A stretch of 64,000 nucleotides of DNA from Lepidodermella squamata (lineage: Eukaryota > Animalia > Gastrotricha). The notes below the pieces were generated by a model. The model worked only from the letters and a program-made list of their open reading frames with translations. It did no database searches and had not been told where the DNA came from. Each line of letters starts with the position of its first letter. The stretch's first letter is position 1. The translations under genes and the position numbers were made by a program. The stretch covers positions 372,001 through 436,000 of the forward strand of contig JBLDXI010000011.1 of the NCBI GenBank assembly GCA_047495785.1. The letters are read 5' to 3'. This document shows, one piece after another, positions 5,656-63,980 of the stretch.

Positions 5656-6382
5656 CATGTCACATGCGAGTTGCACGGATCATCTCAAATGTTAACGTTC
5701 TCCTGTTTCCTACCGAATGTTTTACAGTTTATCCAGGTTTCACGTTTCATGTGTTGGAGCACTTCTTTTCGCCAATGGACTAATGACAAGTTTCCCTTCC
5801 CATATTTTCGCTGCGTATTTTGCATAAATAATGGATTTTACGAATTTCGGCCCAAATTTGACATCAAAAGGGATTTTCGTTTCAAACGATTAAATAGATT
5901 TAATCGAACTCAACTATATTCTTAAGTGAATTAATAACCCAGATTGATGTGCACTTGATCAGTAACCGATAACCGATAATCGATAATTGATCGATAGCTA
6001 ATTTGATATCACAATATTAATCAGCGTCATTACTAACCCAAACTTTCATCTTCACTACGATTCAGTAAGATTGCGATGATTTTCCGATTTTTCCTTTCCC
6101 CCCTGAAAAATCTCACGCCGAAACTCTACTATCGTCCTTGCAAATTCGGTCATCGCAGGAGAATTCAGCTATGTGTGAAGAGCGTCTGATCACATGTTTT
6201 GATCGCGTGATTTTGTTTGATCGGATATGAGATAAATTCAGAATTCACAGTAGCTTTATGTTCAAAGTCGCGTGAGAATTGCAATACCATGGCCATGTCA
6301 TTTTCCTATAGCAAGAGTAGGTACTGAAGCGAACTTCTGATATAATTCGCAATCTCTATCAGGATTTAATAACTTTGCAGCG

Positions 6383-7747
6383 ATGCGAATTATTCAACTG
6401 GCACTGGTGATCATTGAGCTGATGGCTGATCGCAGCAAAGCGGATCTCAAATTCGAGGAAAGCGAATTGATTCTTCAAATATTTCGAGATTCTTGTCCTT
6501 ACGCTACGTACAAGTGGCTGACGAACCACCGATCAAATGGAACCAATAAAGTACCTATTGAAATTTCATTGGATTTATCGTTACAAGCGCCCGTCGACAT
6601 CCGTGAAATTACCCGCCAGATGGCTGTTCTATTGTCGATTGATGTAAGCTGGTCCTGGCCGTGCGATTTCGATGCTTTCTGCAGAAATATCAAAGCTACC
6701 AGCATCACAGAATGCTCGTCCTCGGCTGGTATGAACCTTGGTATGAAAGTATCAATGGACCAGGTATGGATTCCTGAGGTTTACCACTTGAATGCGATAG
6801 CAAACCCAAAGGAAATAATGGCGTGAGATGATACTTGGTTCCTTCCATCATTGTAGTTATAATTTGTGTTTCAGATCTTTGGCGCTGTCGCCCGTAGAAA
6901 TCCGCCCGTTTCTCGGCCTTTCGGTATGGGGTACTGCAACCAAGTTGGAATCACATTGCTTGGAAAACTCGGGCATAGCTAAATTTCCTTTCGACAGCTT
7001 CGAATGTGCGATTCAAATAGCAACAACGTCTGACTCAATCATAAAAGAATTCACACACGAAGACAACTTCGAACAATACGAAGATGTCAGCAATGTTTGG
7101 ACATTCGTACGCAAAAATCATTCCATTGGCGATAGCTTCATCGTTATTCAGTTGTTATTCAAGCGCAAGCCGGGATTCATCGTCCAGCAAGTCATTGTGC
7201 CTTGTTACATTTTGACTGTGTTGCAAATTATAGGCCTGATAATGCCTGCCAAAATGCCAGACCGGCCTGTCTACAACATGTCAGTTCTCCTAGCATTTTT
7301 TGTCATTCTCGGCATGATTTTCGGCGCGATTCCACCATCACCTGAGCCGATTTATCTCGCAATCTTGATCGAGACGAAAATAAGCTTTGGAGTTGCTATA
7401 ACCCTGTACACACTTGTGGCTCTTCGTTTAGCTAAGCGAGAGCGGTGGAAGAAATTGTCGCACAACTCGATTAACTTACACTACATATGTACTAATTGGT
7501 TCAAAGTTAGCGGCCTGCGTGCCCTTTTGAAACCACGAATTTCTTTTTGTACCAAATTTTTATACGAAAGTATATTTTTCGAAATAAACATAATAATAAT
7601 AATAATAATAATAATAAAACGGCTTTGAAGAAGTTTTCCATTTCATTTGGAGCCATCGACGTCATGGACATTGCAGCAGCGTGTTTTTTCGTAGCATTAT
7701 CTGGCGTAATCGATGCTGTCCTATTCAGTAAAATGCTCGACAGGTAA
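6383..7747 (+). CDS. Cys-loop channel copy 2 (exons 6383-6822, 6875-), disrupted by a 164-bp insertion in the M3-M4 loop; possible pseudogene
   Basis: Family motifs present; 52-nt intron; the original M4 (KTALKKFSISFGAIDVMD...KMLDR) lies out of frame after insertion 7455-7618. Confidence 0.85.
7455..7618 (+). mobile_element. Short retroposon-like insertion with AATAAA and (AAT)n tail
   Basis: Interrupts the alignable coding sequence; a second copy lies inverted at 8172-8309. Confidence 0.8.
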
Positions 7748-8171
7748 TAACACTAACAACATTATGACAATGCTAATTGTTGATTGTTTTGATTTTTGAT
7801 ACTCTCCTGGTAATCTCTGAATGGCGTATCGAGATGTATCTGATTGGCGCTGTGTGTGAACTTTTGTTTGCGACGTAATGAAAACTTGGCAGGCTTTTCG
7901 CTATCTAACAAGCCTCAGTGTTCACGAATCGTGAAGCATTTGATCGGATTATTTGAACGGAAATTGAAAAAATGCCTGATTCCTGGCTGAGAGGTTTCGT
8001 CGCTGCGTTTATTGGGAAAAATAATCATTCGCGAATTTCTTTTACAAAACTGGCTCGAAAGATGAGATTGGCAGCGTTATTTTTACTGATAGATTTCACG
8101 CTTAAACATTTCGACAATGCGATTATAAGATTTGATGACATCACTGAAAGGCAATTTCGAATGCAGCATTG

Positions 8172-8309
8172 TTATTATTATTATCTTTATTTCGAAAACA
8201 TATTCAATCGTATAAAAAAAATCGGTAGGAAAGATTCGTGGTTTCAAAAAGGCACGCAGGCCGCTAACATTTAACCAATTAATACAATATAATTTTGATT
8301 AGTGCGACA
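8172..8309 (-). mobile_element. Second copy of the (AAT)n-tailed element
   Basis: Reverse complement matches 7456-7616 (TGTCGCAC...GTTAGCGGCCTGCGTGCC...GAAACCACGAAT...TTCGAAATAAA). Confidence 0.8.
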
Positions 8310-8369
8310 GAAAGAAGAGGGTGTTAGATCAGAAAAATGCTCAATAGGAATGAAATTAATACGAATATA

Positions 8370-9505: not shown

Positions 9506-9603
9506 TATTCACAAAGAATGATTTATTTGAACACAACTAATTATAATATAATCGAGCGATATCGTCGTCATTTTTCGTTAGTTCATGTCCAAGATAAATC
9601 CCA

Positions 9604-10101
9604 CAGATTTGAAGATAACGAAGACGTTGGCGATGTTTGGGCCTTCCAACACTTCAACTATTCGTGCGAAGATAAACAGTGCTCAATTGACTTGTCATTC
9701 AACCCGGGTTTGATCCTACAACAAGTCATCGTTCCGTGCTACATTTTAGCTGTTCTCCAAGTTGTATGCCTGATAATGCCTGGTAAAATGGCGACCGGCC
9801 GGTTTACAACATCACGGTCCTCCTCGCGTTTTTCGTCATTCTCGGCGTCATTTTCGATGCGATTCCCAAGTCACCGCACCCGATTTTCCTCGTCATTTTG
9901 ATCGAAGTGAAAATCGCAGTCGGAGCGGTCATCCTTTGCACGCTCCGTTTTGCATAGCGTGTCCTGTCAAAGCGACTGGCTATGAAGTTGCCCTTTATTT
10001 CCTTCACCGTCATTGGCATCATGGATAGTGTAGCAGCAACCAGTATTATCGCCCTGTTGGGCGTGATCGACGGAGTTTTATTCTACATAATGTTTGAGTG
10101 A
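9604..10101 (+). pseudogene. Cys-loop channel exon-2 pseudogene
   Basis: DVGDVWAFQHFNYSCEDKQC...VIVPCYILAVLQ, then frameshifts, deletions and stops. Confidence 0.9.
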
Positions 10102-10727
10102 CCATGGTTTGAAGATAAGCCAGTAGCTCTGCAGAAGTCTGTTGCTACTAACCCCCCTCAAGCTAATTTCTTTTCTTTGTTCACTAAGTTATGCCTGTGA
10201 GCTCATTCATTGTTACGAAACAGTTTACAGCTGAGAGTTGCACCATTGTTCGGTCTTTGCTGAAAGCCTAAATTTAACAGTTACAGTTGACAGTTTAATT
10301 CTGCTGGCTATTTCCTACTTGAATTATCCGTTGAAGCCCCATTAGGCAAAAATAGTTTTTGTCTAGGAAATCAGGATCAAACAGCGTCTTGCATGCGTTG
10401 CAGAGAGCAAAGTAACGTAGGTAGGATGTAGGGATAATCCTTACCTGTTCCACAGGTTCGTACGGTGAACTCAGTCAAAGACCAAAGAGGAATACGGTCC
10501 ATTTTGAAGGACTGACGACAACTTGAAGTACGTGGATAAGCTTTCACCTATCTGAAGGGCGAAACAGGGTTCAAAAAAGGAAATGGCTCACGTAGAAGCC
10601 ATTTGCTAAATTGTCGATTCAAAAAAATGTACCAATGCACCCATCGGTACAAATCTATAAAGAATCTGCTCAACACTCGAAAGAGAAAATCATGACAATC
10701 CAGAAGTTCTATTTTATTTGCCGATTT

Positions 10728-12345
10728 TTAGCCTGGTGAGTCATCGTCATCAGAGCTTGCAGAATCTTCACTGCTGTCATCTGAAACGCTAACTTCTGAG
10801 GCACTGGTTTCAATATGAGAGGCAGATGGTTGTTTGTCGGCAGGCTCCGGCTTCTGAAAGGATTTTATCCAGTCCAGAACGGCCCGTTGAAGCCCGAGTG
10901 GACCAAACAACCGGGCAACATCAGATTCTGTGAATTTAGCCAACTCGTCAGCGTGCACGAAAGACTCTGCAATTATAAATAAAAATGAGATTCCTTTTCC
11001 ATCCTAGGAGAATTGAAGAATTGATAAGCCACTTCGTTCCAGGTGACGTAGATATCTACGGCACATGCTTCGTTCTGGCTTTATATCAAAGTTCTCGTTT
11101 CTCAACCCTAGGTTTTGCTGTAATTCTGTTTCTTCTTATTTTATGTATAAAAGGCTAGCTGACTAATAAATCTTACCTTGCATTCGGTTACATATGGCCT
11201 CCTTCAAGTAGTTGGGAATGATGGGGGAATCGCGAATCCTATTGAGATTCAGGATCTAGAAGATAAACAATTAAGTTATAAATCTTGTAAGGCCGTTACA
11301 TTATCCATCGCATAACTAAACGACTATCGCTGTAAAATTGTTCGCTTACATCCACGGTAATTAGGCTTGAAAGCACCGAAGACCGCTCGAAGTGTCTAGT
11401 CTGCTGCCGCATCAAATTCGCAACTTCCAGCTGCGTCTTCTGCCGCTCGATCGCTCGGTTCGATTTGTGAAAACCCTTGCGAAGAATCTCGTCAACAATC
11501 GCCGTAACCGTAGTCGCCCAAATTCCATGGCCCTCTTGGAAATTCTCAGTTTCCTCAAAGTTCGACTCGCCAGGCAGGCGTTGGACACCGAGAACGTTAC
11601 CAGTCGCTTTATCGACAATTGGAGCCCCAGCGACTGTTATCAAGTCTTTGCCGAAAGAATCGGGCAAATCTGCATCGGCCGAATGCTTGAACGTCTCGCC
11701 ATTGTCCTCCTTATTCAACGCTAGAATCAACCCGTTCGACCAGCCCCTTGGATAATGGAATAGCAGAATCGCTTTCTTGTTGCTGCCAAACGATAGCGAG
11801 CCAACAGTTGTTGATAAAGTGAGAAAATTATGATTCCGCCGGATTAAATGGCAAATCATTCGGCTTGATAGTTCGATAAAAGTGATATTGAGCCGCCGAC
11901 TGGCGAACCAAGCAGCGGAATCTAGGCCTAGTTGAATGATGACTTCATCCTCTCCACTAGCGGTGTGAAAATCAAGCCTCAAAGCCACTAAATTCGTCCG
12001 GCTGTTGATGAAGGTCGTCATTAGGCCGTAGACTATCGAGGAGCCGGTGCTTTGGAGGGGGAGACCGCATAGGAAACCGGTGCTGATGAGGGAATTCGCA
12101 TTTACTTTGCATACACCATAAGCGATTTGAAGGACTTCTTCGTCTGAAACCTCAGAAATCGGGGTTTCGACAGGTTTCGGCTCTTCAATCGGCTTTTCGG
12201 CCGGTTTTTCTGGTTTCAAGTCGGTTTTTTCGGGCTTCAAGCTGAGGCTGGTGGTTTTTCGTGGCCCTGATGTCGAGTGCATGGTCCCCGGCTCCCGAGT
12301 CATCGTCCGCATGAAGCTGACTTGCCTGCTGCTTTTTTCAGCCAT
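10728..12345 (-). CDS. Trypsin-like (serine protease fold) pseudo-protease with C-terminal SAM-like domain (exons 12345-11300, 11238-11177, 10966-10728; 448 aa)
   Basis: VCKV..STGFL, LMTT, ITFIEL, HYPRG, AGAPIVD..GNVLGV pattern of trypsin-2-like peptidases; GT-AG introns give an in-frame join to LVMRWI...HADELAKFTESDVARLFGPLGLQRAVLDWI (SAM-like). The first acceptor is uncertain. Confidence 0.65.
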
Positions 12346-13265
12346 TTTGTACGCTAGCGAACCTATGTATTGATTAAACAATGAAAACGAAAGTATTTTT
12401 TTACGCATGTGGTATCAACTTGGCTCCCTTGCTTTTTGCTGCGCCAATTTCGATGAATAATTGATGCCTGCAAAAAAGTAACCTATATCGATCGCAGCGG
12501 TCCGATGTCGATTCAAAAAAAGCGGCGTTATGCCAAATTTGCAATCGTTTTATTGATTTTTTTTGCGTGAGGACCAACAAGTTTTGATTTGGTTTGCTGC
12601 ATAACATGGGAAACAGTTTCCATTTCCAATGATGAATGATGTAACCTGGCTGTCTGGGCGGCTACTTCGGTGAAGATAACAGAATCCGGAGGTCGGCAAT
12701 GAGCATTGTGCCGAAGATGGACGCGCGTGGATATACACGGTGGAAATCAAGGAAATATAAAGGTTAAAGCCATATGACAAATCTTATTATGACAACTGCG
12801 TACTATTTTTTTCGATAGCTTCATAGCCATGAGGCATTTTTTAATGCGGCTTTCACCAGTCGATAGATCTAGTCTGCGGTAAACTTGCTTGATAATTTGG
12901 TGGGAAAGGGATTCGAGAGTCGACAGAAGAAATTAATGACGGAAATTTTGAAGATTTTTCATTAAATAGCCTCTCAAATTTGACGATACAGGGGCCTACT
13001 TTTTTTCTCGTCTGGTCTGGCCGGATACCCACCATCCGTACTGAAAGTCGCAGACTGATACTTTATTTGAGACCCGTCAAGCGATTTAGGCTTTGTCTAG
13101 CAAACTACGACGTTCTCCTCACATGTGATTCATGTTTTATTGCAATGTGTATCTTTGAGCGGATATTAAACCGCTGCGTTTATTAAAAAGCAGGTGAAGT
13201 ATTTATTCGCGAATGCCGGTTTCATTTCGATAAGTTGAAAAGTATTTCGCTGTAGAAATCAGTCT

Positions 13266-15261: not shown

Positions 15262-16271
15262 TTAACACAAAAAACCATGTTTGTCTGTCGGATTTTCTCA
15301 TGTGTTAATGACGAAAGTGGATATACTTCGGATTTTCGATGTGATTTATAGGATGCGTACATCGCTAGCATCGTTGTCGGATTAATAATGCTTGTTTACG
15401 TGAGTTTCAAGGCGCTGGTTACAAGTGAGAAGTCATTTGTGTTCCTCTAGGCTCTAGGTACACACTCCTCATGAAATGTTTCCATTTTGATGGAACAATA
15501 TGACCGGAAACAAGTGAAATTGGGGTTTGGCGAATTTTCTGTGTTTTCCAGCAAATGGCAAATGGTTGACTTGAAGAAGGATGATTCTTGGATTCCAAGA
15601 TTTTCCTACTCAGTTATTCTTGATGAGTTCAAATTTCCGAATTTCAGACATCTAGGATGCTCCTATCTTCCTTAAAATACGAAATACCCTGGATTCACCC
15701 TGGAAGGTCTTATTGGTTTGGGTTGTCGTAGAGACACTAATAACTTGATCCCGACATAATGTTTAAATATATCTAGCGAGATTTCTCACCTCAGGTTATA
15801 TATACCCTAAATAAATTCAACTGTGCTCAGGAAAATAGCATCAGAATTTATTGCGTAATTAGTAATTAATGCAATTAAAACTGAATTTTTTTAACGGAAA
15901 TTTTTTGAATTAGCATTTAACCTTTGAAGTCCATTTTCTCAGCCATCCTGATGAATATAAACCCATTTTTTCCCGTTCGTTTATCCCGTAGAAAGTGGCA
16001 TCAAAATCTCACGACGTCCAAAATGTCGCCAAACCCCACTTTTCACTTGTTTCCAGTCACATGAAATGTGAAAGCGAAATTCATGTTCTGGTATTATTTT
16101 GGCGGAAATGAAAAAATACCTGATCTGAATAAATTTCTGAAGCGCGATCGGCGAATCGGGCCTTGAGTGATCAAACAATTTCATAGATAACAATTCGATT
16201 GTTGATTCAAGCAATGCAGTGCCGAGATGCGTGTTCGTATTGGAAGGACTCTCAATTTTATCTAAGTTGAA

Positions 16272-18888: not shown

Positions 18889-19464
18889 GTTGTCTGAGTT
18901 ATTCAGACAAAGTTATTCTGAGGTAATTATCAAGTAATTATCATTATCTGAAGAAATTATGGAGATAACAGATGCGGCCTCGGCGCTTAAATATCATAAA
19001 GTATGCGTAATATTTTTTTTGCATCACACCTTTTTAATAACTTCATAACTATGAGGAATTTTTTGAAGCGGGTTTCACCAGTCTGCGGTAAACTTTCCTC
19101 AAATTTTTGTTGGAATGGGGTTGGAGCATATAATCAAAGCTCTGGCTAGTTTGAGTCAGTTTCAAGGCGCTGGTGACAAATAAGTTATTTGTGTCTCCTC
19201 TACATTCTACATACTCGTGCAATTCTTCCATTTCGGTTGAACAATTGTAGATTATGACAGAGAAATTTATATATGTCATAGGGTATTTGGATATTTGTTT
19301 TATTCATTACGTATTGGGTATTGGCTTTATTTGAGCGGAAATGAAAAAGCCTGATCCTCATGTAGGTTCTGATGCGCGATCGGTGGAGCAATCAAACAAT
19401 TTCATAGATAGCAATTGGATTGTTGATTCGTATAGGAAGCACTCTTAATTCAATTGAAGCTGAA

Positions 19465-24563: not shown

Positions 24564-25364
24564 AATGTTGCCTAACAATGACATGCAGCTATTGATAGGG
24601 ATTATTCAAGTAAATATTAGATTCTCCCCCACTTTCATGGCAGTCAAACGATCAGCTATGATTCTGGTTGATTGTTTGAGCTGTTGATGTTGGAATTGAT
24701 TTCCCACTCTAAGAGACGGAAATGATAAATAAATGGTAAATTCGAAGTATTGAATCGGGAACAGTTTTCATTTTTGGAAATGACATGACAAAGGAGACAC
24801 AACAATTCAGCTAATGGACCGAGCTGTGAACTTGCACAGAATTCCGAAAGGGTCTTTATGGCCGTGAAATAGTTGATGCTTTGAGCTTTGATGTGAAATG
24901 TGGGGAAAGAAGAGCCCTGTCCGGCGAGAAGATGAACTGGAACAACATGATTGTGGTGAAGATTGTGGAATCTACGGGTTCCTTGATGCTCGCAGAAGGC
25001 CAGGCCTAGTCAAACCTGTGGCCTAGCGGTAGCCTTGATACAAAACAGAATTCTAAATCTAGGTATTCGGCTTTTTCGAGAGGGTTATGCAGATTCCTCA
25101 GATTTTGCAGATGCAGCCATTGATGATAGTGCATGATACTATCGTAGCATCGGCGCTTCCGATTTTTCATACTATTTGACTACTGAAATTCATAATTTCC
25201 TGGCCATCACAAGTCGGTCGTCGGCTCCAAGCTTTGTGATCCTCCGCTTTTATGTGGATTGTTTGAGCGGATATAAAAACGACTGAGCTTGCTGGGTTTA
25301 TTGCATAAGCAACAACAAATACAACGCGATTTTCTCCTCGATATCTGGCAGTTGAAACAAGACA

Positions 25365-26587: not shown

Positions 26588-27160
26588 ATAATGGAAAGGT
26601 ACGAAAAGATGGACCTTTTCTCCGTATCCGACTTGACCTGATGTAAATGGGTTCTTTTCGTTTCGTGATCTCTGTAAAATCTATTTGGTAAGCTAGGTTC
26701 AGTAACTCAGTAAGTCAGAAACTCTCAAAGATTGCCGATCGCTCAGCAGCCGATTTGAAAATGGGCATTAACATCATTTTTGATCGCCCTTTTGAGGTGT
26801 GTCACGATTCGATGTTGGCATTTCGAAAAGCATTGGATTACTTTACACTTTACACATAAATTCGACATCAAGAAGACAGCGAGATGAATATTTGATCGAA
26901 TATCAAATTGATTTGGAGTTTATCATTCCTTTTCATAATCAAAATGCAGATCAAATGCTATAATCTCCAACTTACTTGAAGATGGCACGACTAGCTTCAA
27001 GGCACTGCAAATTTCTGATGAACGATTAAAACGCGAGGTGATTGGATTTCACGTTTATTTACACCACGTTACAGAGGTTCGCTGAGCAGATATGACTAGC
27101 TGCATAAGCAACCTACACGTTGACATGTTGATAAATTCTACATGATGTTCACATTCGTTC

Positions 27161-27868: not shown

Positions 27869-28059
27869 GATTCACTGCGCGAAGATGATACAACGAGCTG
27901 CGCAAAGCACAACATATTTCCAATGAAAGATTGATTGGTTTATTTACACAATTCAGAGTTACGCTGTGCGGATATGAGTAGCTGCATTCCATGCCCTTCC
28001 CTTATTGTTTATGAATTCTACATGATGAAAAAATTCGTTTCATCGAGAGATCGGCGTTG

Positions 28060-29446: not shown

Positions 29447-30273
29447 CTTTATATCTTTCCTCCTCAACTTTATAATTTGTTATGCTTGGAGCCTCCGCTC
29501 GTGTGCTTTAATTCGCTTCTCCATCTAAGATTTGAGTGGCTTAATGGCATCTGCACATGGAAATATGCACAAGGCATTTATAAAACAGTTTTGGCGCTGT
29601 TCACCGTTGTTTCTGTCAGAATAGGTACAGTTCATTGTTCATTGCAACAGCACAATCAAATACTAGTTGTTTGAGGTTGAAGCATTAAATTAAATTACAG
29701 TTTCTTTATTCTTTGACTACTTTTATGTTATTTTTCATGATATTTTTTCATTCCCACAGCGCGTCCTAATCATTTTAAGTTGTAGGGAAAATACTTTTCG
29801 CAGCCCTGTGAGCTTAAAGGAAACCGCTGAGAACAATGGTAATAGTAGTTTTATCCGACTGCTGGGACGGACTTGAGCTGCTCCTTTGCCAATGAAGAAC
29901 AGGAATTGTTCGACCCTCGTCTATCATCAACGGATCCTCGGCAAGAAAAATAATGGCCATTTGGTTATTCCAAGATTTGATTTTACAAGTTTTCAGTTAT
30001 TGTATTGTACAGCATAGCCCGGGTTGGCTATGTCAACAATTGCAATATTGTAGATTTATAAAGTTTCCGAACATGATCAAGGATCAAGCTACCCATAAAT
30101 ATTCTGATACTTCAATTACAGTCATGTTTATTTACATAGCACAGGGATTCGTTGAGCGGATATGAGTCGCAAGAGTCGCAAGAGCAGCTCATGGGCATGG
30201 TGCACTTTTAGCAAAATTCTACTCGGCGTATAAATCTTTTCGCAGAAATCGGCTGCCTGGCGAAAACGAAGAA

Positions 30274-35013: not shown

Positions 35014-35338
35014 AAGAATGCAAAATCATCTGCTAAACCGCATAGTTTGGATTGTTGAACGCAGAATTCACAGGAAAAGGCGTCATAAGGCATCAGAGAT
35101 TTCAAATCAACAAATGCACCCATTGATTTTAGAGTCGCTGGCGCTGGTATATTGTTTGCTTTTTCGCGATTTATCGAAACTATTCGGGCAGAAATGAAAA
35201 TTTGTCACGGTATTTGCTCGATTGCATTATGGAAAAATGAGAGGTACGACCGGTGTTCGAAAAAACTTGATTAAAATCCGAGTTTTCAATATAAGCTTCA
35301 AATTCTTTAGCTTTTTTGCACATAACAGGGAAAATCAC

Positions 35339-37176: not shown

Positions 37177-38030
37177 TGCTTTGTAACAAACTTTGAACTT
37201 TGAAATTCAAATTCTAGATGATGACTTTTTCTCTTCTTACGTTCTTTATGTTAATAAAAGATCATTAGCAAGAGCATTTCAGGGGGTCCGAACTAAATTC
37301 TATCCCTCATGTAATTATTGACAAATCCTAGCCCCCAGCGCTTTGAGATTTAGGCAGAACAGAGACGAGCATGATTCAAGATAAATATTTGTTCAAGCTT
37401 TTTACGACCACTGGTCGGGTAAGTTCCAAAACGAAAGCATACTGATAGAAGCTATGAAAAAGTCTTATTGAAATAGAAATATCGATTCTTCGAGTTTGGA
37501 ATATCATATTCATATGTTCTTCACCCTCCCCCTTCATCCTCCATCGAAACTGATGCAAATCGAAATGGATGGGATCACCTTTTCAAACATACAGCTTCAT
37601 AAACTATTATTGTTTGCTTTGCCTACTTTGCCTACTTGGCTTGCTGTACGCTGTGACATGTGTATTGTGTGTTCCAATTCTCCCTGCATTCTGTTTTCTG
37701 GATGGCCTGCAAATTTGCTTCTATCTTGTTTTTTTCAATTTTCAACGCCGCTGACAACTTGACAACAGAGATTGCGGGGCTTATAGCAAGCAGGCAGTCT
37801 ACAGTGCACCGCAATGTTTTCAACGTAAATAAAGGCGTCCTTTTTTGTGTTTATTCAAGCGATAATTCGATATTTCGAGCGGATATCACCTGCCAGATGC
37901 TGTGGATGCTTTGCAGAAATGACGAAAAATGCACGGATGCAAACAATTTTTATCCTACATATATTATACATATATTGCACAAACTATCACCATTATTTTA
38001 CAATATTTTGTTAAAGATGCCTCTATAATA

Positions 38031-41534: not shown

Positions 41535-42051
41535 GCTGACCTTATGTTTGAATCGAGCAAAATCATGTTTTGAATTACCGAATTGCCGTACTGTATTAGA
41601 GAGCCTTTTTCTGCCATATCACGATTGCTCGCGATCTCTGCAGAACTAAGGCGCAGAGCTCTTCCTCCTCGAAAGTAAAAACGGCACGACGTATCAGTTA
41701 TCAGTCAAAGAGAAAAAACAATTGAAAGTATATTTTTTAGGCCTGAGTAAGCATTTTATCTTCTGTCATATCGTTGTTTCTCGTCGTCAGAATGAAGGGA
41801 GTAAGCGCACTGTATAAACACAGCTGTTGAACAGCTCGGTTAACAAAGCGAGGAAATTCATCTTACTACAGACTACAGAATGTAATAAAGTCAACAATGC
41901 TTGCGAACTAATAAAAATTCTTAACAATCTCTCAGCTTCAGTGGTAGTTAGTCCTCAACTAGCTATCGTCTGCAAAATCGGAAATATTGTTTCGCATCAA
42001 ATCTAAATGAAAATTTGTTGCAACGTCGGACTGTGAAATAATTCAATTAAT

Positions 42052-43686: not shown

Positions 43687-44306
43687 CAAGAGATATACCG
43701 TTATCTTCAAGGCTTTGCAATTACGGAAGTTGATAATATGTGCTAACATATGCAAATAAATGCTGCGCTTCATCGTAACTGGACTTTACGTAACGTTTCA
43801 AAGTTCTTGTAGAGTGATGCGACGGGATATGACGTGATCTTTAATGCTCTTCCAATACTGATTTGTGGACCAAACTCGCTCGGGGTTTGAGATCAGGGGG
43901 AAATTCCATTTCTCCATGGCTAGCTATAGAATAATCCTTCAGAGTACTACGTAGTGCAAATTTGAACGGAAAAAATGAAGGAGTGTATATTGGAAAAACA
44001 TTGGAGACACAGTCACAGTGCGTTTGAATATCAATTCTTAGTTTAGCCTAGCGCAGAAAAGTTTCGAACGGATGCTATAGCCTCTAACATCTCAGCTCGG
44101 GCTTCTCTCTGCAGTTCTCTGCAATAAAGCGTAAACGGCTTTATATTCAATAGGCGAATGGAGGACTGTTGTTGTCGTTGTTATTGGAAAAATTGTCAGA
44201 GATATTTGCTCGGATATTGAGCCTGCGCCGAACAAAACCTCTCGCCTCGTCTGTGCTGCTCCATCGATCAACATTTTTTGTGTCATTTATTTGTGCCGAT
44301 TTCACT

Positions 44307-46158: not shown

Positions 46159-47530
46159 GTCACAGCATCACTTAGACGTCTCAGTTTATATCAACCCTTC
46201 TTTCAGCAACCTTTTCAAGCAAAATATTACAGGAAAGGCGGATCGAAGTTAGTTTGAATGATGAATGATGAACCCTTGTGCTGGGTCAATGCAAAATAAA
46301 GCTTTTTCAATAGTCGCACGCCAACTTTTAAAACTCAAAAAATGTTTTGTTAACTAAATTCCGGCGGAAAAAAAAACGAGCAACATAACGGGCAGCAATT
46401 CAAGTGAATGTATTCACCCTGAATCTTTAAACTGTAAAGTATGCCACGTTTATTTCTAACAGCAAAGGAGTACACATAATTTTAGCCTGAATGAGGGTCT
46501 GCTCAAGTTTACTTCGACAGAGAAAGGAACAAAGGATCAGAAATAACACTGATTTTACGATATCTCGAGTTCCAATTGTCTAACAATGCTAAACATTTGT
46601 AGAATTTCACGCTGAAGGCGCTCGGATCGTTTGTTTCTACGCCTGAGCAACAGATTATCGAGTATCGATTATTGATTATCGGTTATTAATTATGAATGAT
46701 CGATTCCATCTAAAATAACGGAATCCGCTGTTAACCGCCGGTTAAACCGAAAAAAACGGGTTACTCTTCTAAAAGTTCGCAACCGAACAGAACCGAACCG
46801 GACAGATTAAAAATAGAAACAGGAACATCTCTAGGAAGAAATACAATATTGAGATGCATGAAAGGGGCATCATTAATGAAATACATCCATCCATTCTCTC
46901 GAAGACATCTGCTGTGCATTTGCAAGAAGAAATTCTGACTTTGAATTTATATAGTAGATTCAGAATTCAAGAAAAATATCCATGGTATGCAAAATACCTG
47001 CTGCAAGGTCTGCTACACCTAACACCTAATTTTCTGACCCGTGGGGGTCTCCTCTGAAGCAGTTCTCCGATTTTTTTTCGTGATTTGAAACTGATTGACA
47101 CTGCTATTTCGGTTCCGTAAAACTCAAATCTGAGACAAATGCTAGGTATTAGGTATCATTAGCCATAATACTTTGTTTTATTAGTCGTATGCTTTCGAAA
47201 CAAAAAAAATGTTGAACTCAATTCTGGTGGACAATACCTATACATCATATTCCATATGGGATGACGTATGGGACCACGCGGCACATTGGCATTTCATCGA
47301 ACAGGAAAGACCGCGATCAAAACAAGCCAGGGGTAGCGAGCAATATTGGCATTGGCTGCAATGTGCTATGAAATTGAGCCGTGGAGACTGTCTTAATTGG
47401 ATTTTGGAGACACCCATATTTGCCCGGATATGAAAGCTAAGGTCGAAACCTACGCGTGTCATAAAAAAGACTGTCGGGTAAAAACAGTTGCGTCCCCTCC
47501 GCATTTGACCTTGAATAGCTCAGACGAACC

Positions 47531-49102
47531 ATGGCTCGCCTCATCTCATCCAGCCTTCATTTTCTGGGTTTCCTATTCCAAGCCCACGCGCTTGTTCAGT
47601 TCGATGACCTAACTGTCATCCACAAAATATTTCGCGAATCCTGTCCCTTGGCCTTCTATCAGTGGCTGCCTAACTATTTCATCATGACAAATGAAACGCT
47701 GAGTTTCGACGTTTGGGTCTACTTACGATCACCCGTCGACATCCGCGATACGGACAATCACTTGTCCCTCCTCGGTGAAATACGGGCGCGGTGGGCCTGG
47801 CCGTGCGATTTGAAGGCTTTCTGTAAAAAGTTGGCAGTTGTCAACGTTACAGACTGCGAATTGCTGCGTAGCAAAGGCTTTTCGATGAAAACATCGCTCG
47901 CTGAAGTTTGGAAGCCAGCTGTGTATCACCGAAATTCAGCCTCATCTCCAGCGGCCATCATGGAGTAAGTGATCATTTCCATCTCAGATATTATATATGT
48001 CGTAGCTGTTGAAGCTATCGCTTGAAATGAAAGAAGTCGGGGCCCCAAGTTTTAAGCCATTCGTCATTATTGTTAAGCAGAGGTTCGTTGTGGGCATAAT
48101 CGGGCCAGATCATTGTTTATTTTCCACCCAGTTAGCGAAGTATGATCCTCGAACTTAGGGGGTATTTTCGATCCCCAATTTTATGACCAAAGGGTCCCGC
48201 AGTGGTTTTTGGGGATTTTTTCCACGTTGGCCTGCCAAACTGGGGGGTACGGTACCCCTCATTCTATACTTTGCGCCCTGCTTTAACCCGATTCACCCGA
48301 TTCGTATTACCGGGATACGATTGCAAAATGTATTTCTCTTAGGTCGATAAAAGATTCAGCATTGGAAATCCAAATGTTCAATGGAACTTCTGAGTGGCGA
48401 AGCACCCTCAAGTTGGAATCGTTTTGCCCAGAAAAGCTAAGAATATCGCAATTCCCATTCGATGCCTTCGAATGCGACATCCAGCTCGAACGGTCTGAGG
48501 CTGTATTCCAAAAGGTTTCATTTCATGTATTAATCAACAAAGACGAAGAAGATTTTAGCAAAGTGTGGAATTTTGAGCGCAAGAACGTTTCTTATGACAA
48601 GAAACAGGCCTCGATTCAACTGTCATTCAGACGCAAGCCGGGTTTCGTAGTTCAGCAGGTCATTGTGCCCTGTTATATTCTCGCTGTACTTCAAGTTCTA
48701 GGCCTGATAATCCCGGCTGATAAATCAGATCGGCCTTACTACAACATCACTGTACTCCTCGCTTTCTTCGTCATTCTCGGCATGATTTTCGAAGCGATAC
48801 CACCGTCTTCGGACACGGTTTACCTCGCGATCTTGGTCGAGATGAAAATTGTTATCGGAGCCGTTGTTACTCTGTACACCCTGGTAACTCTCCGTTTGGC
48901 AAACGGATGCCTATCGAAATACGCCGCCATCAAATTTGTCTACGTTTCGCTGAATGTCACCGACATAATGGACTTGGTTGCGGCGTTTGTTGTAATTGCG
49001 ATTTCGGGCATCATAGACGGAGCTTTATTTTACAAAATGATCGAACACAATAATCGCTCAATTTCTGACCTCTTTTCAGACTTTTTCCGCCCAGATGTTT
49101 GA
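47531..49102 (+). CDS. Cys-loop channel copy 13 (exons 47531-47964, 48343-49102; 397 aa)
   Basis: Family motifs; in-frame intron. Confidence 0.92.
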
Positions 49103-49878
49103 GAGTTGATAATGCGCAACCGAGCAGGTCATTCGTTATTTCATTTCGCCGTCTGATTTGGTTTGTTTCAATGTTTCGTGTCTCTTTGGTTGTATTTTCA
49201 TATTGGGGTTAAATGGACAATTTTCAAATTTTAATTAATTTTATGAATAAATGAAAAGTTTAGATAACGTTTCGTAACGTAACGTCACGACATCAAAAAT
49301 ATTAACGATGTTTTTCGGCAAATGACACGAAATATTTGCTTTTTAAATAATACAGTTTTCAAGATGATTGGTGGATCTAGTGGATCGAGTCGCTACGATA
49401 TTTCATGAAGCTGATTCATGAAGGGTTCACGTCCAGTTGAGAAACCTGCACACAACACACAACAATCCTTCAACCTAAGCACCAGAATCAATATCTGGGA
49501 ATCTATTCGCATTTTTGGAGCGTTTTTGTTAGTTCGTTCCAGAACCGTTAAAACAAATATGCCGAAACAATAATTCGCATAATTTTTACCAGTTCATCAA
49601 CAAACCTTTAAACGAGCAAGCGTTATCTGTTATTTTAGTCCGCTGCCAATCAATCTACAATTTTAACTTCGGCATAGTCATAGAATTTATTGCAAGGTAT
49701 CGCCAATACAGGCGATGTATTTTGTATTTGTTCGAGCGAAATTTCAATACTTCTAGCGGATATCGCAAGTTGAATGCTTGTAGCTCATTGAACCAACGAA
49801 CGAATTGATATCAGCTATTCTGCATATATTGCTAAAACTATAGCTTTGAATTCACAATAATTCATTAAGCTTCGTAGA

Positions 49879-51077: not shown

Positions 51078-51569
51078 TATAACCATTGAGGTGAACATTT
51101 TTTGCTGAAATGGTAATTTGACAAATAAAAACTCGAATATTGAAGGTGATGTCGTCGTATTAGAATTACTCTGCTTTTTGAAGCATAGTATGTCGTATAT
51201 CGTGGGCGACAGAACAATTTGCCTCGGTTTGAAATGTCGTAAAACGTAAAACTGTATGCAAAAAGTTGGTCTGATGAATCGCGAATTGCCATGTTGATCA
51301 CAAGTTTAGTTTGTGGCGAGACACAATCGCAATTGTTTGTAAGCAAAGAACCCTTTGCCCTTTGCCCTTAGTTTGTGGTACCACATGAGATTGAATTTCT
51401 CAGTTCATACTATTCCGACCCCTGACATTGTTTTTATCTGCCTTTGAAGGAGAGATTATTTGCTCGGGTATGAATCCATTTTATAAACAACACGTCAAGC
51501 CTGCATGCGGTAGAAAAAGAGCTTTTCAACAAATTTGGCCTCCAACAAATAGAAATCCGACAAGGCTAA

Positions 51570-52100
51570 TCATGACACAAATTTCATCCTGCCTTCTATT
51601 TTAGGCCTCCTAATCCAAACCCATCCGCTTGTTCACTTCGATGATCTAACTCTGCAATCCACAACATATTTCGCGCCTTTTCTGGCCTTTTACGAATGAC
51701 CTCGAAAGCCTCTGACATTTTTAGAGCTTTCTGGCTATTTTTTAGGGTTTTATACCGACATTGTTCAGGGATTTTTGGGATATTTCAAATTAATGGCGAA
51801 AAGACCCGGATAATAATGTATGAATTTTCGATCGGGGTATGGGCCGTTATGTATGTGATTTGTATGTGACGGGGTATGCGATTTGAAGTTTTTTTTACCG
51901 TTTTTCTTGGTGATTGCTTTCTCGATAATCTCTCAATGTCTCTCTATACCGCGGCTTAGCTGCCAGCCAGTGAAAGAGCGAGATTTGTCGCCGAACGGAA
52001 GCCTTCGGTCTCAAGACACTAGATTCAGGTTTCCTGAGCTAGGCCTAATAATCCCGGCTGATGATAAGCCAAATAGTCCTTACAATGTACATTCGAGGTG
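51570..52100 (+). pseudogene. Decayed copy-13-like Cys-loop channel remnant
   Basis: CTTGTTCACTTCGATGATCTAACT matches copy 13 exon 1; GLIIPADDKPNSPYNV matches copy 13 M1-M2. Confidence 0.7.
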
Positions 52101-52469
52101 ATTCCATAGTGACGCCAACATTGTGCCACCACGAAAAGATCCAAAAACAGGAAAGCTTGCAGAAACGATGTCCGCGGCCCATGTAACGGGAGCTTCGAAG
52201 CCGCGGCGTCCTATAGTACGTCTCATGTTTTATCATGGTTTTTCGGCATACTAGGCATAGGCATTGGCAAGTAACGTCAATACAGGCGATGTATTTTGTG
52301 TTTATTCTAGCTAAGTTTCAATACTTCTAGCGGATATCACGAGCTGTGGCGTAGCTCGTGGAAATAATGAAAGAAATGCAGGGTGCAAAGAATTGGAGCT
52401 ATTCACTATTCAGCATATATTGATAAAAATATCACTTTGAATTCACGTTAGTTCATTACGCTTCGAATA

Positions 52470-54990: not shown

Positions 54991-55666
54991 GATTCCCCTC
55001 AAAAATCCTTTCAGCTTTCAGAATGAATCACTCGCTCAACTAACGCGTATCAGGCAGGCCACATGTCCTACTTTCAGCGCTGTGGCAGCCATACGTAAAA
55101 GGCCAACGCGCAAGATTCGCGGAATATTTTCTCTACTTCTATTTGAGGGAGAACATATTTGCCAGGATGTTAATATGCAAGTCAAAGCCACGAACCAAAA
55201 AATTGATTTAACAAGCTTCCAGGTGTAGTGCGAATTCGCGAATTCGCGACGAACACATGCGAACGAGGAATCATTGCATTCTCTTTTTTGGTTAAAACAC
55301 TGACATGCGATTGGTAACACCATCCCTACTTCTCGTCTTTGGCATTCTAATGCAAGCGCAAGCGTATATTCGTGTGTTCGATGACCTAGGTGTTACTAAC
55401 AAAATACCGTAAAATCCGAATTAGAAGGCACTGCCCTATATTTGAAACAATCGACCTCGAACCCCTGCCTTATAAACGAGACCTGCCCTGTATTTCGGGT
55501 CTGCCCTATATTTTTTCAAATGTCCACCTCGCATTGTGGCACATGTGAAAATTCCTATTATCAAGGTCGCGAATCATTTTCGTGTAGCCACCCCCTGGAA
55601 AGTGACCCATCGCGCTCGAGTTGTGTCAACGAATAGCGATCATTTGTTGACACTCGGGGATTAAGG

Positions 55667-57169
55667 TTGGGGCGTTGCCGGATTCGCCTGTCGTTCAAAC
55701 GCAACCCGGGTTCCATAGTCCATCAAGTTATCGTACCAACTTACGTTCTGGCTGTACTTCAGATTCTAGGACTGATAATCCCAGCGAAAATGTCAGATAG
55801 GCCATACTACAACATCACAGTCCTGCTCGCGTTTTTCGTCATTCTCGGCATGATTTTCGAAGCGATACCACCGTCTTCGGACACTGTTTACTTGGCAATT
55901 TTGATCGAGTCCAAAATAATTATCGGAGCAATTACCGTAAATTGGGGCAAAATGGCCGCGGGAAAAAAATGACCCCCTGTTTTTTCCGCATTTTTACACG
56001 TTTCAGGGGGTCCTGATTCCGATTTTATAGGAAGCTCATTTTGCCCCAGGTTTGGGGCAAATTGGACAGGTGTTTTGGGGCTAATTGGCCACCCTTATCC
56101 TTATAATGGGTTTTTAATGTTTAGTGATTGTGAGGGTCGAATGGTCGAGTGGTCATCAGAACTTGTGTGATCTGATGAACGAGGGTTCGATTCCTCATAG
56201 AGTAGCATTTTTTGCGTCGCTTTTAATTTTTTAATTTCTTGTTAATTTACCTTTTTAATTATTTTAAATTGGTTTCTTCGTTGTTTTCGTAATTTTACTG
56301 CTGAATAAATTTTAAAACGTATCCCGAACAAAAACTGCCTGGGATACGTGGCATGCAATAATTTAAAATAATTAAAAAGGTAAATTAACAAGAAATTAAA
56401 AAATTAAAAGCGACGCAAAAAATGCTACTCTATGAGGAATCGAACCCTCGTTCATCAGATCACACAAGTTCTGATGACCACTCGACCATTCGACCCTCAC
56501 AATAACTAAACATTAAAAACCCATTATAAGGATAAGGGTGGCCAATTAGCCCCCATTATCGAGTTTTCCATGGGGTAATTTGGCCTCAATCACCTAGCCA
56601 TACCTGTGCATCGCCTGGGGTCGCGGTTTTTTCTGCTGTCATCTACGACGAAGATGGTCGAAGGAAAAATTGTCAACTTAACATGAAACCTCGTGATTGG
56701 CTCCAGGTAATTCAATTGAAAGGGGTCATTTTTACCTCCCTAAACTCACCGTTATACAACAACATGCTGTGACCTCATTTTGGGACATACCTGGCTAAAA
56801 ATTTGCAGGTTTGTAAAGGGCTTGTTGATAATCCTCCCGGTAAATTTTTGTAGAGTTTGATGTTGTAGTTTTAGAGCCATCAATAAAAATGTGAAAACCT
56901 CAATTTCTGGCCAATTAGCCCCAAAGGTTCATTTTGCCCCAAACGACGGTATAACTCTGTACTCTCTGGTAACTCTTCGTTTGGCAAAAGGGCGATTATC
57001 GAAATACCCCCATGTCGAGTTGCTCTCCATGTCCTTCAGAGTTACCGATATAATTGACATCGTTGCTGCGATCACCGTAGTTGTCTCTTCAGGTATCATC
57101 GACGGAACCCTGTTTTACAAAATGATCGAACCGAATGATAACTCAACTTCTGATACATCTTTTGAATGA
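55667..57169 (+). pseudogene. Copy-13-like exon-2 pseudogene split in M3 by a transposon
   Basis: ...KIIIGAI|ITLYSLVTLR... rejoin exactly on removing 55935-56951; 5' part missing. Confidence 0.92.
55935..56949. mobile_element. pogo/Tc1-type non-autonomous element with internal 194-bp inverted repeat
   Basis: Imperfect TIRs CCGTAAATTGGGGCAAAATG / CATTTTGCCCCAAACGACGG; TA TSD defined by the interrupted codons; arms 56077-56270 and 56360-56553. Confidence 0.9.
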
Positions 57170-60100
57170 GAGCTGTTTTCCAGTTGACCGGTAATCGGTT
57201 TGGTGAAACAAAATTAGCAGTATCTCATTGTAAGGGCTTTTTCAAGGACACATCTCGGCTTTTATTCTCACATCTCACCCACCACCTCCCTGAGCAGCAA
57301 GTGCACGTTTTTTGCGAAATACTGCCAAGTTCCAGTGGGAATTGCAAGAAACTGCCTGAAAACGCCGTTTACTGCCATTTTTCATCTTTTTTCAAAACTT
57401 ACTGCAGTTTTTGGAAAAAACTGGAAGTTAAAAGCTGGAAACCGCAGTAGCTTCGCGAAATTGACAGTTGTTCATGAAACTGGGGAAATTCGGCATTTTG
57501 CGACCCGAAGTTAACTGCCAGGTAAAATATTTCTTCGCCGCCGTTAAAAACTTTCGATTTTTCTTTATTTTCACTGCGAAGTCAGAAATAGTGAACGAAA
57601 GTGAACGAAATTCGATGCCTCGGCCTCTAGTTTTTTGCCGAAAATTCCCTGGCTCGAAAACTGCCTTCTACCTATCCGGATCAATCTGTTTTTATTTATC
57701 ATGAAATTTCTCGTTTTTCTCGCTTTTACCTAATTTTTTCCTAATTATTTACCTGGATCCTAAAAATTACCGAATTTTCATTTTTTGCAGCCTGAACCAT
57801 CTAAAATTGAAGAATGACAGCAAAATTCGATAATTTGGATTTTGCCAAATTTTTAATGACTGAAAATTGTCGCTCTGAATAAAAGCTGAAATAGGGCAAA
57901 ATCATTGTTATTGGGGCGCTCGATTGTTGTGCACACAGGCCTCGGGGTGTTGCGTAATCACGCCATGCTTCAAAAATGTGGCTTTTTGGTTCCTTCAAAT
58001 CATCATATTTTTGTTTTCAATTCCAAAACATGTCCTATTTAGTAAGAATTTTTCGTCCGGCCTCAATTTCGCATTCTGAGCTTCATCGTTGCCTTGCTAC
58101 CAGGTGTGTCGACCATGCAATTTGGACAAGTCAGATATTTATCGAATTTTCAAGGTAATTTTGAAATTAATTCCGCTTTCTTTAATTTACCCGCAACTTT
58201 TGAAGGTTTGTCCTGCGAATCGAATTTGCAGTCGAACCAGTCTTAACGGGCCGGTCAGCAATTCGTAACGGTATCGATGAATAATTAACAAGGTATTTCA
58301 GTGTTCAATTAATTTCAATTATTAATTTCAATTATAATCTACAGGTTATCGGGCCTGCTCCAGTGGCGGTTTCTGCATCAGTCACAGCCGTTGTTCGAGC
58401 GTCTCGTGAAACATCATTCACTATTAACTTGACAATTTTTCAATTTTCTTTTATTGATCAGTTTTGATGAATAAAATGATACTTGCATCGACGGATTTGC
58501 GTGAAGGGTAAAACTGTCTTTTTTGAAACAGAGAGTGAAAGCCGCATTTCTTATAGTGAATGCGAAGTACAAATGGCCCTGAGTGAAAGTTCGAGTGAAA
58601 TTAGCAACGAGCAAGTGACTGCGCAGTAGAAACCATCTCTCACCACAAAAACTCTCACCGCAGAAAACCACCCAGAAAACTGTCCAGCTCGGCAAAAAAC
58701 TAGACTTTTGACAGAATACTGCCAACAGAAAAACTCTCGCTAATTTGCATATTTAGTTTTTTTGATCTAGGCAGTTAAAAGGCCCGAAATTGTCGCTCAG
58801 GGCTAATACATAGTAATTATTGAAATGAGCGGTTAACCCATGCTACGATTTGATTTTTGATCTGATTGAGTATAATCTTCTGTTTTCTTCAAATCTCACC
58901 TTTACGAATTTGTACGCCTTTTTTTTACTACCAGTATCAAGTGTTTGAAAATTCACGCATTTTTACATTAATAAAAAGTTTTGCACGCCGACGTATCGCG
59001 ACAAAAACATTCTATCACTTTTGACCTCGCGTGGGCACATTTGACCTTTGACCTGCAAAAAACCTAAGTCAAATGACGTATGATTTCGAAACGCCGTGCA
59101 ATAAAACTTATCCTAGAAGTTAGTAAAATTCTGGTAACAAACACCAACTTCTTGTATACCCCGGGGCTGCCAAAATAGTCGCATGGTTGGCCTGGAGTGC
59201 GACTTCTTGCGACTTCTTGCGGCTCAGCAGCGAGTTCGCGCCCTATTTTCCTGTGTGCCTGAGAATGATGATACTGACGTGTAGTGTTTCCCACCCCGAA
59301 TGCCACATGAAAAACAACGGCTGCAGCCTGTTGAAAGGAAACAAAATTGAATAGAGCTAAATTGCACTACCGGCATATGAGCGATCTTACTAAAACAGCA
59401 GCGAAATATAAAACGAGCTTTGCCATAATGTTTGTAGACAGGAAGACTGGATAAATTCACACTCTCTTGAAGATGACAAATGAACGATGATATGAGCATG
59501 GTGGAGTATCTCGAAAACGACTTTTTTCAGTCACGCGCAGAAGAAAAACATTGATAAGCGAACCCCGTCTTCGCATATTTTTTAGAATTATTTATTGACA
59601 TTAAATGACTACGAGCTACGAGCTGTGAGCTAGAGAAATTGGCCAGTAAACTTATACCCACGCCTTCGAACTAAAGCCTTGCACGTAGGAACATTTTCCA
59701 CTTTTATAATCAATTATGCAAATGAGTTTGAAATACAAGAATACAAGGATACAAGAAACCTGATTTATTCGTCGAACCTTTTGCTGGCAAATTTTTCTTG
59801 TATGCTGTATTTCTTAAACTCATTTGTATAATTAATTATAAAAGTGGAAAATGTTGCTACGGGTGTAGTCGGACAACAATCCACACTTGATACGGAAGCT
59901 AGAAATGACGGTAGGTATCACGCCATTTGACTCGCCTTCATAGTTGTTCAGTCTCCGTAGCCAGCGTAGTGAATTAGATAATGAGATAAAAAATGTGAAA
60001 TGTGAATCGAGCATGAAGACTGGCGACGGGATAGTTCAGACAAATATTTGCCCGGATATCGAGTCGGGCTGGCGCGAAACAAAATTCCACGTCGAAAAGC

Positions 60101-62064: not shown

Positions 62065-62192
62065 TCCACGACGTTTTAGAGAAAAGGTTTCGTGTTATCA
62101 ATCAAAATGCCTGTTATTATGAAAATAATTTAACCAAGTGTAGCTATAACTGTTTCTTCAATCTTCAATGTCGCTTGCATGATAAATCCCAG

Positions 62193-63207
62193 CAGGGCTG
62201 CAAAACATGCTAGACTTCCCGCGCACCGATTTAAATTTCCCGCTAAACCCGCTCGCTCGCGGTGTATTCCGTTCTATATTTCGTATCAACCACGTACTGG
62301 CTTTTAGGGCTTATTTTATTCGTCTTCTGTGGCAGGGCGCGCGACCAACTAATTCACCGCGAATTTTTTGTTTCGAGCGATTTGACAGGAGACTATTAGC
62401 GATATTTTACTAAAATTTGCGTGTGCTCGCGTTACTGTGAATCAGAAATTAATAACTGCACGCGTTAGGACTCGTTTTTCGTGGGCAACCAGACGCGCGC
62501 GCTTGGAAAAAAATGATTCACTGATCGCACAAACTCGGCTTAAAAAGACAAAAATCAAGTTTTTGACAATGAGGAATTCCACAAAACAAATTAGATATTC
62601 GGATTCAGCGTAAAAAGTTAGGCAAGTGTGCAAATTTGCGCACGTTTATCTTCCAAAATGAAGAAGAAATGCGGTAGAACAGTTTAACTGTGTGTGTGTG
62701 TGCGCGCCTAATAAAACAGCGCGAGTGCTCTCAAATCTGCTCTCTCCAAGTCGAAAGGTGTAGTAAATGCGCGAGAGGTTGTGCGCGCGCAGCAACGCAC
62801 ACCGCACAAAAGCACACACACACACGCGCGCGCGCACTAACGAAATTGAGATTTATTCCCTCAATGTTTTCCCCATTTTTAATCGCAGCCGCGCGCAAAT
62901 ATGCCATCTAACTCAACTTTTTGCGCTGAATCAGAATATCTAATTTGTTTTGTGAAATTCCTCATTGTCAAAAACTTGATTTTTTTCATGATATCCGAGC
63001 TAAAAGAACGATTTTAGAATTTCCTCCGATTTTAAATATTCCATGGGCTAGAAAAATACGAGTTCCCCCACGGAAATTGTATTTTCTAATACTTCCCGGT
63101 AATGTTTTTTCCAAATTTCCCGGTGTTTTTTTGAATTTTCCAAGGCGAAATTTCCCAAAAATTTCCCGCGCACATTGTGCGCCATTTTTGCATGTTTTGC
63201 AGCCCTG
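62193..63207. mobile_element. hAT-like non-autonomous element
   Basis: TIRs CAGGGCTGCAAAACATGC / GCATGTTTTGCAGCCCTG; 8-bp TSD AATCCCAG. Confidence 0.92.
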
Positions 63208-63961
63208 AATCCCAGAATGCATTTCATCTCATTTTTATATTCATCCACTCAACTGTCATATCCGTATTCCGTATAAAGTTTGTGCTTGTATCTTGTATCT
63301 ATAACGAAATAAATTTGTCATACGTGAAGGGATTTATCCAGCTTTTTTGTCCGAGGTGATGGATTGAAAAGTTGAGGGGGTTTAGAGGTTAGAAAATTTG
63401 GATAATTAGGGAATTTGAGGAGCAGTGCTCGAAGTATGGGGAAAGGGTCGTACCCCTAGTTTGCAAGGCAAACATGGAAAATCCTCATAAAAAACCACAA
63501 GAGGGCTCTAGTTCCTACTTCGCGCACTGTTGAGAAGCAATACGTCGCTGAATGATGGCAAATGGTTTGGTGTTAAATATGGCCAGATCCGATGCAGGAA
63601 TATCCCAGAAAAGCGGAACATTTTTTTGATCCAGAAAATTTCTGCCAAGAAGCTGGCGGAGAATATGCTCATTGGTCTGTGTTTTGTAACATGTCTGTTA
63701 CAGGTTTCCTATAACGAATTTTTATGTGTCCATGAGCATTTCAGTCAATAAGCAGATTTCGTCAATTTATTGAACTCTTATTTACAATGGCCAAGCCAGG
63801 AGAACGGCTGCCAGGAGAATACAGAATACGCCTTTACATGTTTTACAACTGGAAGCAATTCGTTACATGAGGATATATGTCACGCGCAGTACTCTTCAAT
63901 AGCGCGCCAGCGGCTTCGCAAGCGGGAGCATGGCATTTGTAATCGCAAGCCCAGTCAGAAG

Positions 63962-63980
63962 TATTTGCTCGGATATTGAG
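63962..63980 (+). promoter_or_regulatory. Family upstream motif without a gene inside the window
   Basis: TATTTGCTCGGATATTGAG, identical to the motif upstream of copy 12 (44203-44221). Confidence 0.6.

Follow-up and report, generated by a model that had tools for sequence, protein, structure and literature searches.

What keeps the same short word in front of one gene after another in a tandem receptor array? The question is raised by a 64,000-nucleotide stretch of the genome of the gastrotrich Lepidodermella squamata (assembly GCA_047495785.1, contig JBLDXI010000011.1, positions 372,001 to 436,000 of the forward strand; the window, in whose own numbering all coordinates are given), which carries a tandem array of 16 two-exon, plus-strand genes for divergent Cys-loop (nicotinic-receptor-like) subunits (G0-G15). 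The original prediction, made from the letters alone, held that the motif CGGAWAT (W = A or T) marks every gene of this array. Genes were located by means of six-frame open reading frames (ORFs) and a pattern search for the exon-1 signature F-R-x-S-C-P, and signal-peptide ATGs were located independently of motif positions; because the DNA upstream of G0 (ATG at 50) falls outside the window, 15 genes have visible upstream DNA. In 14 of these 15 an exact CGGAWAT precedes the ATG by 73-169 bp on the strand of the gene, at each of the 14 core positions originally listed; in the fifteenth, G8, the corresponding site reads CAGAAAT, a single core change with the flanks intact. The claim for every gene therefore holds as 14 exact copies and one near copy, with the reservation that the G10 core stands without flank signal.

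The sites, all on the plus strand, are as follows, with the C of the core given as its position and scores taken from a 19-column position weight matrix (PWM). In the first third of the array they lie at 6214..6230 in G1 (core 6222; ATG at 6383, 161 bp downstream; PWM score 23.7), 13152..13168 in G2 (core 13160; ATG 13266), 16095..16111 in G3 (CGGAAAT, core 16103; ATG 16272), 19328..19344 in G4 (CGGAAAT, core 19336; ATG 19465) and 25260..25276 in G5 (core 25268; ATG 25365), where the motif overlaps a TATAAAAA. They continue at 27961..27977 in G6 (core 27969; ATG 28060), 30149..30165 in G7 (core 30157; ATG 30274), 35181..35197 in G8 (CAGAAAT, core 35189; ATG 35339; PWM score 18.0), 37872..37888 in G9 (core 37880; ATG 38031) and, as a core-only CGGAAAT match with a flank score of -25.8, at 41979..41985 in G10 (ATG 42052, 73 bp downstream). 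The last five are at 44203..44219 in G11 (core 44211; ATG 44307), 47417..47433 in G12 (core 47425; ATG 47531), 49749..49765 in G13 (core 49757; ATG 49879), 52323..52339 in G14 (core 52331; ATG 52470) and 60045..60061 in G15 (core 60053; ATG 60211 or 60160).

The CGGAWAT signal in the window is positional. The whole-window count was only mildly high (34 observed versus 20.7 ± 5.1 expected), yet 16 of the 22 plus-strand matches fell at family promoters (those of 14 genes, the 7958 relic and an orphan site), with the 18 others, counted over both strands, at or below chance, and the motif was not present in the proximal upstream DNA of the non-family genes within the window. When the sites were anchored on the core, column information was restricted to positions -8 to +9 (T.TTTG.G-CGGAWAT-.A), with background outside, so that the real element is about 13-15 bp long, TTTG-NN-CGGAWAT-(G)A; the extended form first proposed, TTG(A/C)(G/C/T)CGGAWAT, was roughly right. 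The PWM gave every family promoter more than 17 bits, G10 excepted, and its next-best plus-strand matches were at 51465, 27087, 26897, 7958 and the orphan site at 63970; it finds essentially only family promoters and relic promoters before decayed exon-1 remnants. A flank score, that is the PWM without its seven core columns, was 6.0 at 7958 and 3.0 at 63970, two untrained sites, against a random 99th percentile of 2.9, and ranged from -7 to -26 at chance CGGAWAT matches. A chance core match within the 100-bp zone of G10 has a probability of about 1%, and for that reason the G10 site is probably real, yet the weakest and least certain of the set.

Shared ancestry was set against selection by four controls. 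In an unbiased search of positions -250 to -1, over all 7-mers with one two-fold degenerate position, CGGAWAT ranked first with 14 of 15 genes, as compared with peaks of 7-8, all AT-rich words, in control regions of the same genes (-500 to -251, -750 to -501 and two 3'-flank sets), peaks of 6-9 in 100 random sets, and a peak of 12 of 15 in the first 250 nt of coding exon 1. The paralogues themselves are old: their exon-1 proteins are mostly 35-46% identical, the median identity at 4-fold degenerate sites is 0.35 as against 0.25 at saturation, and flanks can be aligned only within G6/G7 and the 27087 pseudogene, G9/G13/G14 and G3/G4, and weakly within G11/G12/G15. Because synonymous sites are near saturation and most flanks are unalignable, selection rather than recent duplication keeps the motif, and the 7-mer controls, the age of the paralogues, the unalignable flanks and the narrow information profile together describe a 13-15 bp island that selection has maintained in at least 9 or 10 independent lineages. 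Presence, position, orientation and extent of the motif can be read directly from the window, and its conservation lies well above the neutral background.

The element also persists in front of decayed copies. As first described, degenerate sites are present at 27087 and 51465, each before a pseudogene; the list of motif-bearing pseudogenes missed a further relic, with its motif at 7950..7966 on the plus strand (core 7958; PWM score 16.8), 104 bp upstream of a relic exon 1 at 8062-8199 (sensitive tblastn, E 5e-4). The site at 27079..27095 (+, CAGATAT, core 27087; PWM score 17.6) precedes a relic exon 1 at 27269-27364, and that at 51457..51473 (+, CGGGTAT, core 51465; PWM score 18.2) belongs to a G12-like pseudogene whose relic signal-peptide region at 51601-51696 (tblastn E 4e-5) is truncated by a repeat. 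All three relics have their inferred ATG about 95-105 bp downstream of the motif. A further relic exon 1, at 34744-35034, has lost its 5' part and carries no motif. The prediction of a common cis-element upstream of the family members is thus borne out, both by the 7-mer controls and 4-fold sites and by its retention before decayed genes.

The orphan site (63962..63978, +, core 63970), also as originally reported, has G11-type flanks and has a 28-bp block (GTCAGA..TATTTGCTCGGATATTGAGCC) in common with the G11 promoter; only about 1% of random positions match or exceed its flank score, which stands at their 99th percentile. It lies 1.9 kb beyond the G15 stop, a longer gap than elsewhere in the array and still intergenic. 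A 17th gene downstream of this motif, beyond position 64000, is likely, and by analogy with G11 and G15 its ATG would be expected at about 64066-64130. Weighing on that prediction, the window does contain relic promoters without an intact gene.

As to what the element does, it is probably the binding site of one sequence-specific transcription factor in each gene's own proximal promoter. One factor would recognise CGGAWAT, or more fully TTTG-NN-CGGAWAT-(G)A, in every gene, probably with the transcription start some tens of bases further downstream; the motif would have been inherited with each duplication and then kept by purifying selection, and all family members would answer to the same factor. 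The element would accordingly be expected to act on DNA, upstream of the start site, and to activate. Upstream ATGs bear on its place relative to the transcript: they show no depletion at +10 to +40 after the motif (13 versus 8.8 expected) and become scarce within the 40 nt that precede the ATG (3 versus 11.4 expected; Poisson about 0.004). Since the depletion is confined to these final 40 nt, the mature 5' untranslated region (UTR) appears to be short, with the motif outside it.

Subfamily alignments point the same way. In G9, G13 and G14 about 70 bp of conserved upstream DNA end with the motif. A variable, indel-rich spacer of about 50-80 bp comes next, and beyond it, 25-55 nt ahead of the ATG, lies another conserved block, CATATATTG-N22-A-CAAT, whose internal spacing is that of a TATA box and a start. 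In G13 this block, at 49822..49856 on the plus strand, runs from the TATA-like CATATATTG to the start-like TTGAATTCAC, and its equivalents lie at about 37968-38002 in G9 and 52413-52447 in G14. A TATA-box scan found no consistent box or spacing across the family, and the motif stands at no set distance from TATA-like boxes (4-119 bp away) or from the ATG (73-169 bp away), as expected of an activator site and unlike a core element. The ATG depletion, the G9/G13/G14 blocks and the varying spacing therefore favour an activator site over a core element. In G3 and G4 conservation extends from about 60 bp upstream of the motif to the ATG, and between motif and ATG the two genes share a near-identical 35-nt block (ATCAAACAATTTCATAGATA.CAATT.GATTGTTGA; approximately 16210-16244 and 19403-19437) that is far better kept than the adjoining DNA and holds an inverted CAAT..ATTG pair.

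Several observations weigh against an activator site upstream of the start. If spliced-leader trans-splicing applied, a short mature UTR would not locate the primary start; the motif could then lie at or after that start, which keeps a core-promoter role alive. The constant orientation would be equally expected of a transcribed or core element and of inheritance by descent, and the G10 site, with its chance-like flanks, does not carry the full element. No start site could be mapped, the sole probable RNA run being very shallow and its contigs beginning inside exon 1 (47568). Support from other organisms is likewise lacking: in a cross-species comparison of contigs, from metagenomes and one sequencing run, for five of the 11 exon-1 relatives (L001-L010), CGGAWAT before the ATG was not consistent, with one GGATAT (L001) and one reverse-strand CGGATAT (L002). 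Because these relatives are too distant, the comparison is uninformative rather than negative.

The probable RNA run, a 2015 data set whose kind was guessed, yielded contigs at 47568-49045 that match both G12 exons without mismatch, leaving the G12 intron and the intergenic DNA uncovered, repeats aside. Part of G13 exon 2 was covered and G14 was not, which, for one shallow bulk run, is a hint of unequal expression among members in whole animals.

An initiator-type role is the first alternative: the motif would mark the start of the primary transcript, and spliced-leader trans-splicing would remove, as an outron, everything between that start and an acceptor near the ATG. We regard this as unlikely, though several observations speak for it. 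Orientation is strict; homology in G3/G4 and in G9/G13/G14 begins only about 60 bp upstream of the motif; and out-of-frame ATGs between the motif and the start codon are nearly lacking in G5, G11, G12, G13 and G15. In some genes, at TATA-to-start spacing (28-32 bp) ahead of the core, there is also a T-rich TGTTTATT(T/C) word that could be read as forkhead-like or as a weak TATA; it lies at 27937-27945 in G6, 30125-30137 in G7, 37848-37856 in G9, 52299-52307 in G14 and 27052-27062 in the 27087 relic, with a variant in G13. Yet this word is absent or very degenerate in about half of the genes and mostly common to related subfamilies, so that it may be the second element of a bipartite site or merely subfamily inheritance. 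The core is, moreover, unlike known initiators, the G9/G13/G14 subfamily has its separate TATA-like and start-like block nearer the ATG, and the variable distances noted above argue, indirectly, in the same direction. An AG occurs within 30 nt of the ATG in 13 of 15 genes, which is roughly what chance gives and hence not evidence of acceptors.

An action at the RNA level, as a 5' UTR or outron element for translation, stability, localisation or trans-splicing, is improbable to a greater degree. The same-strand orientation of all copies would suit it, as would the ATG formed inside the motif (CGGAWATG) at 8 of 16 sites, a possible tiny upstream start; however, in many genes (G1, G6, G9) 3-6 upstream ATGs separate the motif from the main ATG, an unlikely feature of a mature UTR, no conserved pairing partner or hairpin was found around the motif, and the flanks are uninformative. 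The motif as a splice or trans-splice acceptor was rejected, 9 of 17 sites having no AG directly before the core (AT, GG, TG, CT and CC instead). That the motif is a passive, functionless leftover of duplication or gene conversion, which the single common ancestor of all copies and a few young pairs with flanks still alike might suggest, is already disfavoured and scarcely credible, given 4-fold sites near saturation, no word in more than 8 of 15 genes in the control non-coding regions of the same paralogues, a motif more widely shared than the best coding 7-mers, and the implausibility of conversion tracts of just 7-15 bp within unalignable flanks.

If the element is a factor site, as we favour, an ETS-type protein is a tentative candidate for the factor, with the balance tilted against it. 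The ETS consensus is (A/C)C(C/A)GGA(A/T)(G/A)(T/C), with GGAA-G preferred. All 16 aligned sites, the G8 variant included, have a GGA(A/T) core (T after GGA in 12, A in 4), which only the 51465 relic (CGGGTAT) breaks, and the C before the core and the A and then T after it fit a loose form of the consensus. The misfits are that position -2 is mostly G, that GGAT dominates (12 of 16), that A always and the preferred G never follows the core, and that the conserved TTTG lies outside any ETS site. This half-site, two bases upstream and unexplained by ETS, suggests that the site may be longer or composite. The original prediction coupled its ETS-like core with co-regulation of the repertoire in one cell class, which is likewise conjectural. 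Zeste-like (YGAGYG), TCF-like (CTTTGWW), E2F-like and GATA-like readings were rejected, each fitting some subfamilies only.

The genes governed by these promoters form an unusual family. Exon 1 (about 145 aa) encodes a signal peptide and the first half of the extracellular domain and closes at a canonical GTAAG/GTGAG donor; exon 2 (about 225 aa) begins at the Cys-loop with FPFD and continues through four membrane helices. In protein searches, all made exon by exon with each exon as a separate query, the exon-2 translation profile matched nicotinic acetylcholine receptor (nAChR) and 5-HT3 chains from the Cys-loop to M3 (E 1e-13 to 1e-7), with only a sub-threshold Pfam match to Neur_chan_memb, and the Cys-loop spacing is C-x15-C versus C-x13-C. 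The exon-1 profile, built from 16 copies, found only 11 matches at E<=0.001 among 1.84 billion proteins, all weak relatives (best 4e-12); judged by these searches, exon 1 is very lineage-restricted and the family appears as a large lineage-restricted set of orphan channel subunits. A word search with exon 2 for relatives found nothing, and a metagenome scan with the exon-2 alignment found no relative. Distant exon-1 domain relatives do occur in compact eukaryotic contigs from ENA metagenomes (L002, L003, L005, L007), adjoining Sushi-, DM9- and VWA-domain genes; some show the same split, with a second ORF after an exon-1-like one of about 140-150 aa.

Two other genes interrupt the array, an M13 (neprilysin-type) peptidase gene at 22070-24394 on the plus strand and, as the sole sizeable opposite-strand gene there, a 370-aa ORF without Pfam match at 11296-12408 on the minus strand. 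The N-terminal domain of the peptidase is split between overlapping ORFs in different frames (22070-23215 and 22945-23739), reflecting either a short intron or a frameshift. At least ten decayed family-gene fragments, exon-1 or exon-2 relics, lie between the intact copies (1644-1895, 7958-8199, 8164-8286 on the minus strand, 9548-10113, 21440-21496, 27269-27364, 34744-35034, 51601-51696, 55445-55996 and 56924-57154), which means that the array turns over through gene birth and death. Three short stretches (48156-48198, 51697-51799 and 52176-52228) belong to multi-copy repeats, showing 10-30 times the local depth in a DNA run and loose ends at either side; one such repeat cuts off the pseudogene after 51465. 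GC content of the window is about 42%, in line with the 43% published for the gastrotrich genome (PMC11660948). That paper makes no mention of the family, the promoter element or trans-splicing, and a literature search for the motif string returned primers and unrelated matches only.

Short motifs shared across the promoters of many genes expected in one cell type or sensory system are familiar from terminal-selector batteries, such as the ETS-site 'DA motif' genes of C. elegans neurons, and from the conserved motifs of olfactory and vomeronasal receptor promoters. The array resembles these systems in that one short motif recurs across its promoters and in a GGA(A/T) core compatible with an ETS-domain factor; it differs from terminal-selector ETS sites in the predominance of GGAT, the A after the core and the TTTG half-site two bases upstream. 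Expansions of nAChR-like and orphan Cys-loop genes in spiralians (PMC6896357, PMC10338036) likewise comprise divergent subunits in large tandem expansion, but those papers deal with proteins and describe no shared promoter element.

The closest parallel is the conserved sequence element (CSE) of the protocadherins (PMC3333863, PMC7811963), where tandem paralogous neuronal surface-protein genes, each with its own promoter, carry, roughly 100-200 bp ahead of the ATG, a single short element that is highly conserved and always in the same orientation. Here too, every array member has one conserved element in a promoter of its own. Tandem neuronal-receptor arrays whose members all bear the same element, in the same orientation, in their individual promoters are thus an arrangement already known, with the protocadherin CSE as its clearest example; what is new is the motif sequence and, as a gene family, the undescribed orphan Cys-loop expansion. 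The two systems differ in that the CSE contains a CGCT box or CTCF-type sequence, neither of which occurs in the conserved columns of the array motif (TTTG-NN-CGGAWAT), and in that array members are whole two-exon genes whereas protocadherin exons are alternative first exons. Stochastic choice, enhancer looping and methylation control are features of the protocadherins; the array is known here from sequence.

We know of no promoter elements described so far in gastrotrichs, and of no genetic tools for them. The genes of this array appear to have their own promoters, and the element could serve as a probe (in the form TTTGAGCGGATATGA) to pull out the regulating factor, as a genome-wide scan query for a co-regulated battery and for unannotated or decayed members such as the 7958 copy, and as a minimal promoter for reporters in gastrotrichs. 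It is improbable that the motif is the docking site of a promoter-choice system in which each sensory cell activates one or a few array members. If that were true, the array would be an independently evolved gastrotrich counterpart, built on Cys-loop channels, of protocadherin and odorant-receptor gene choice, and it would use a different motif and a different factor.

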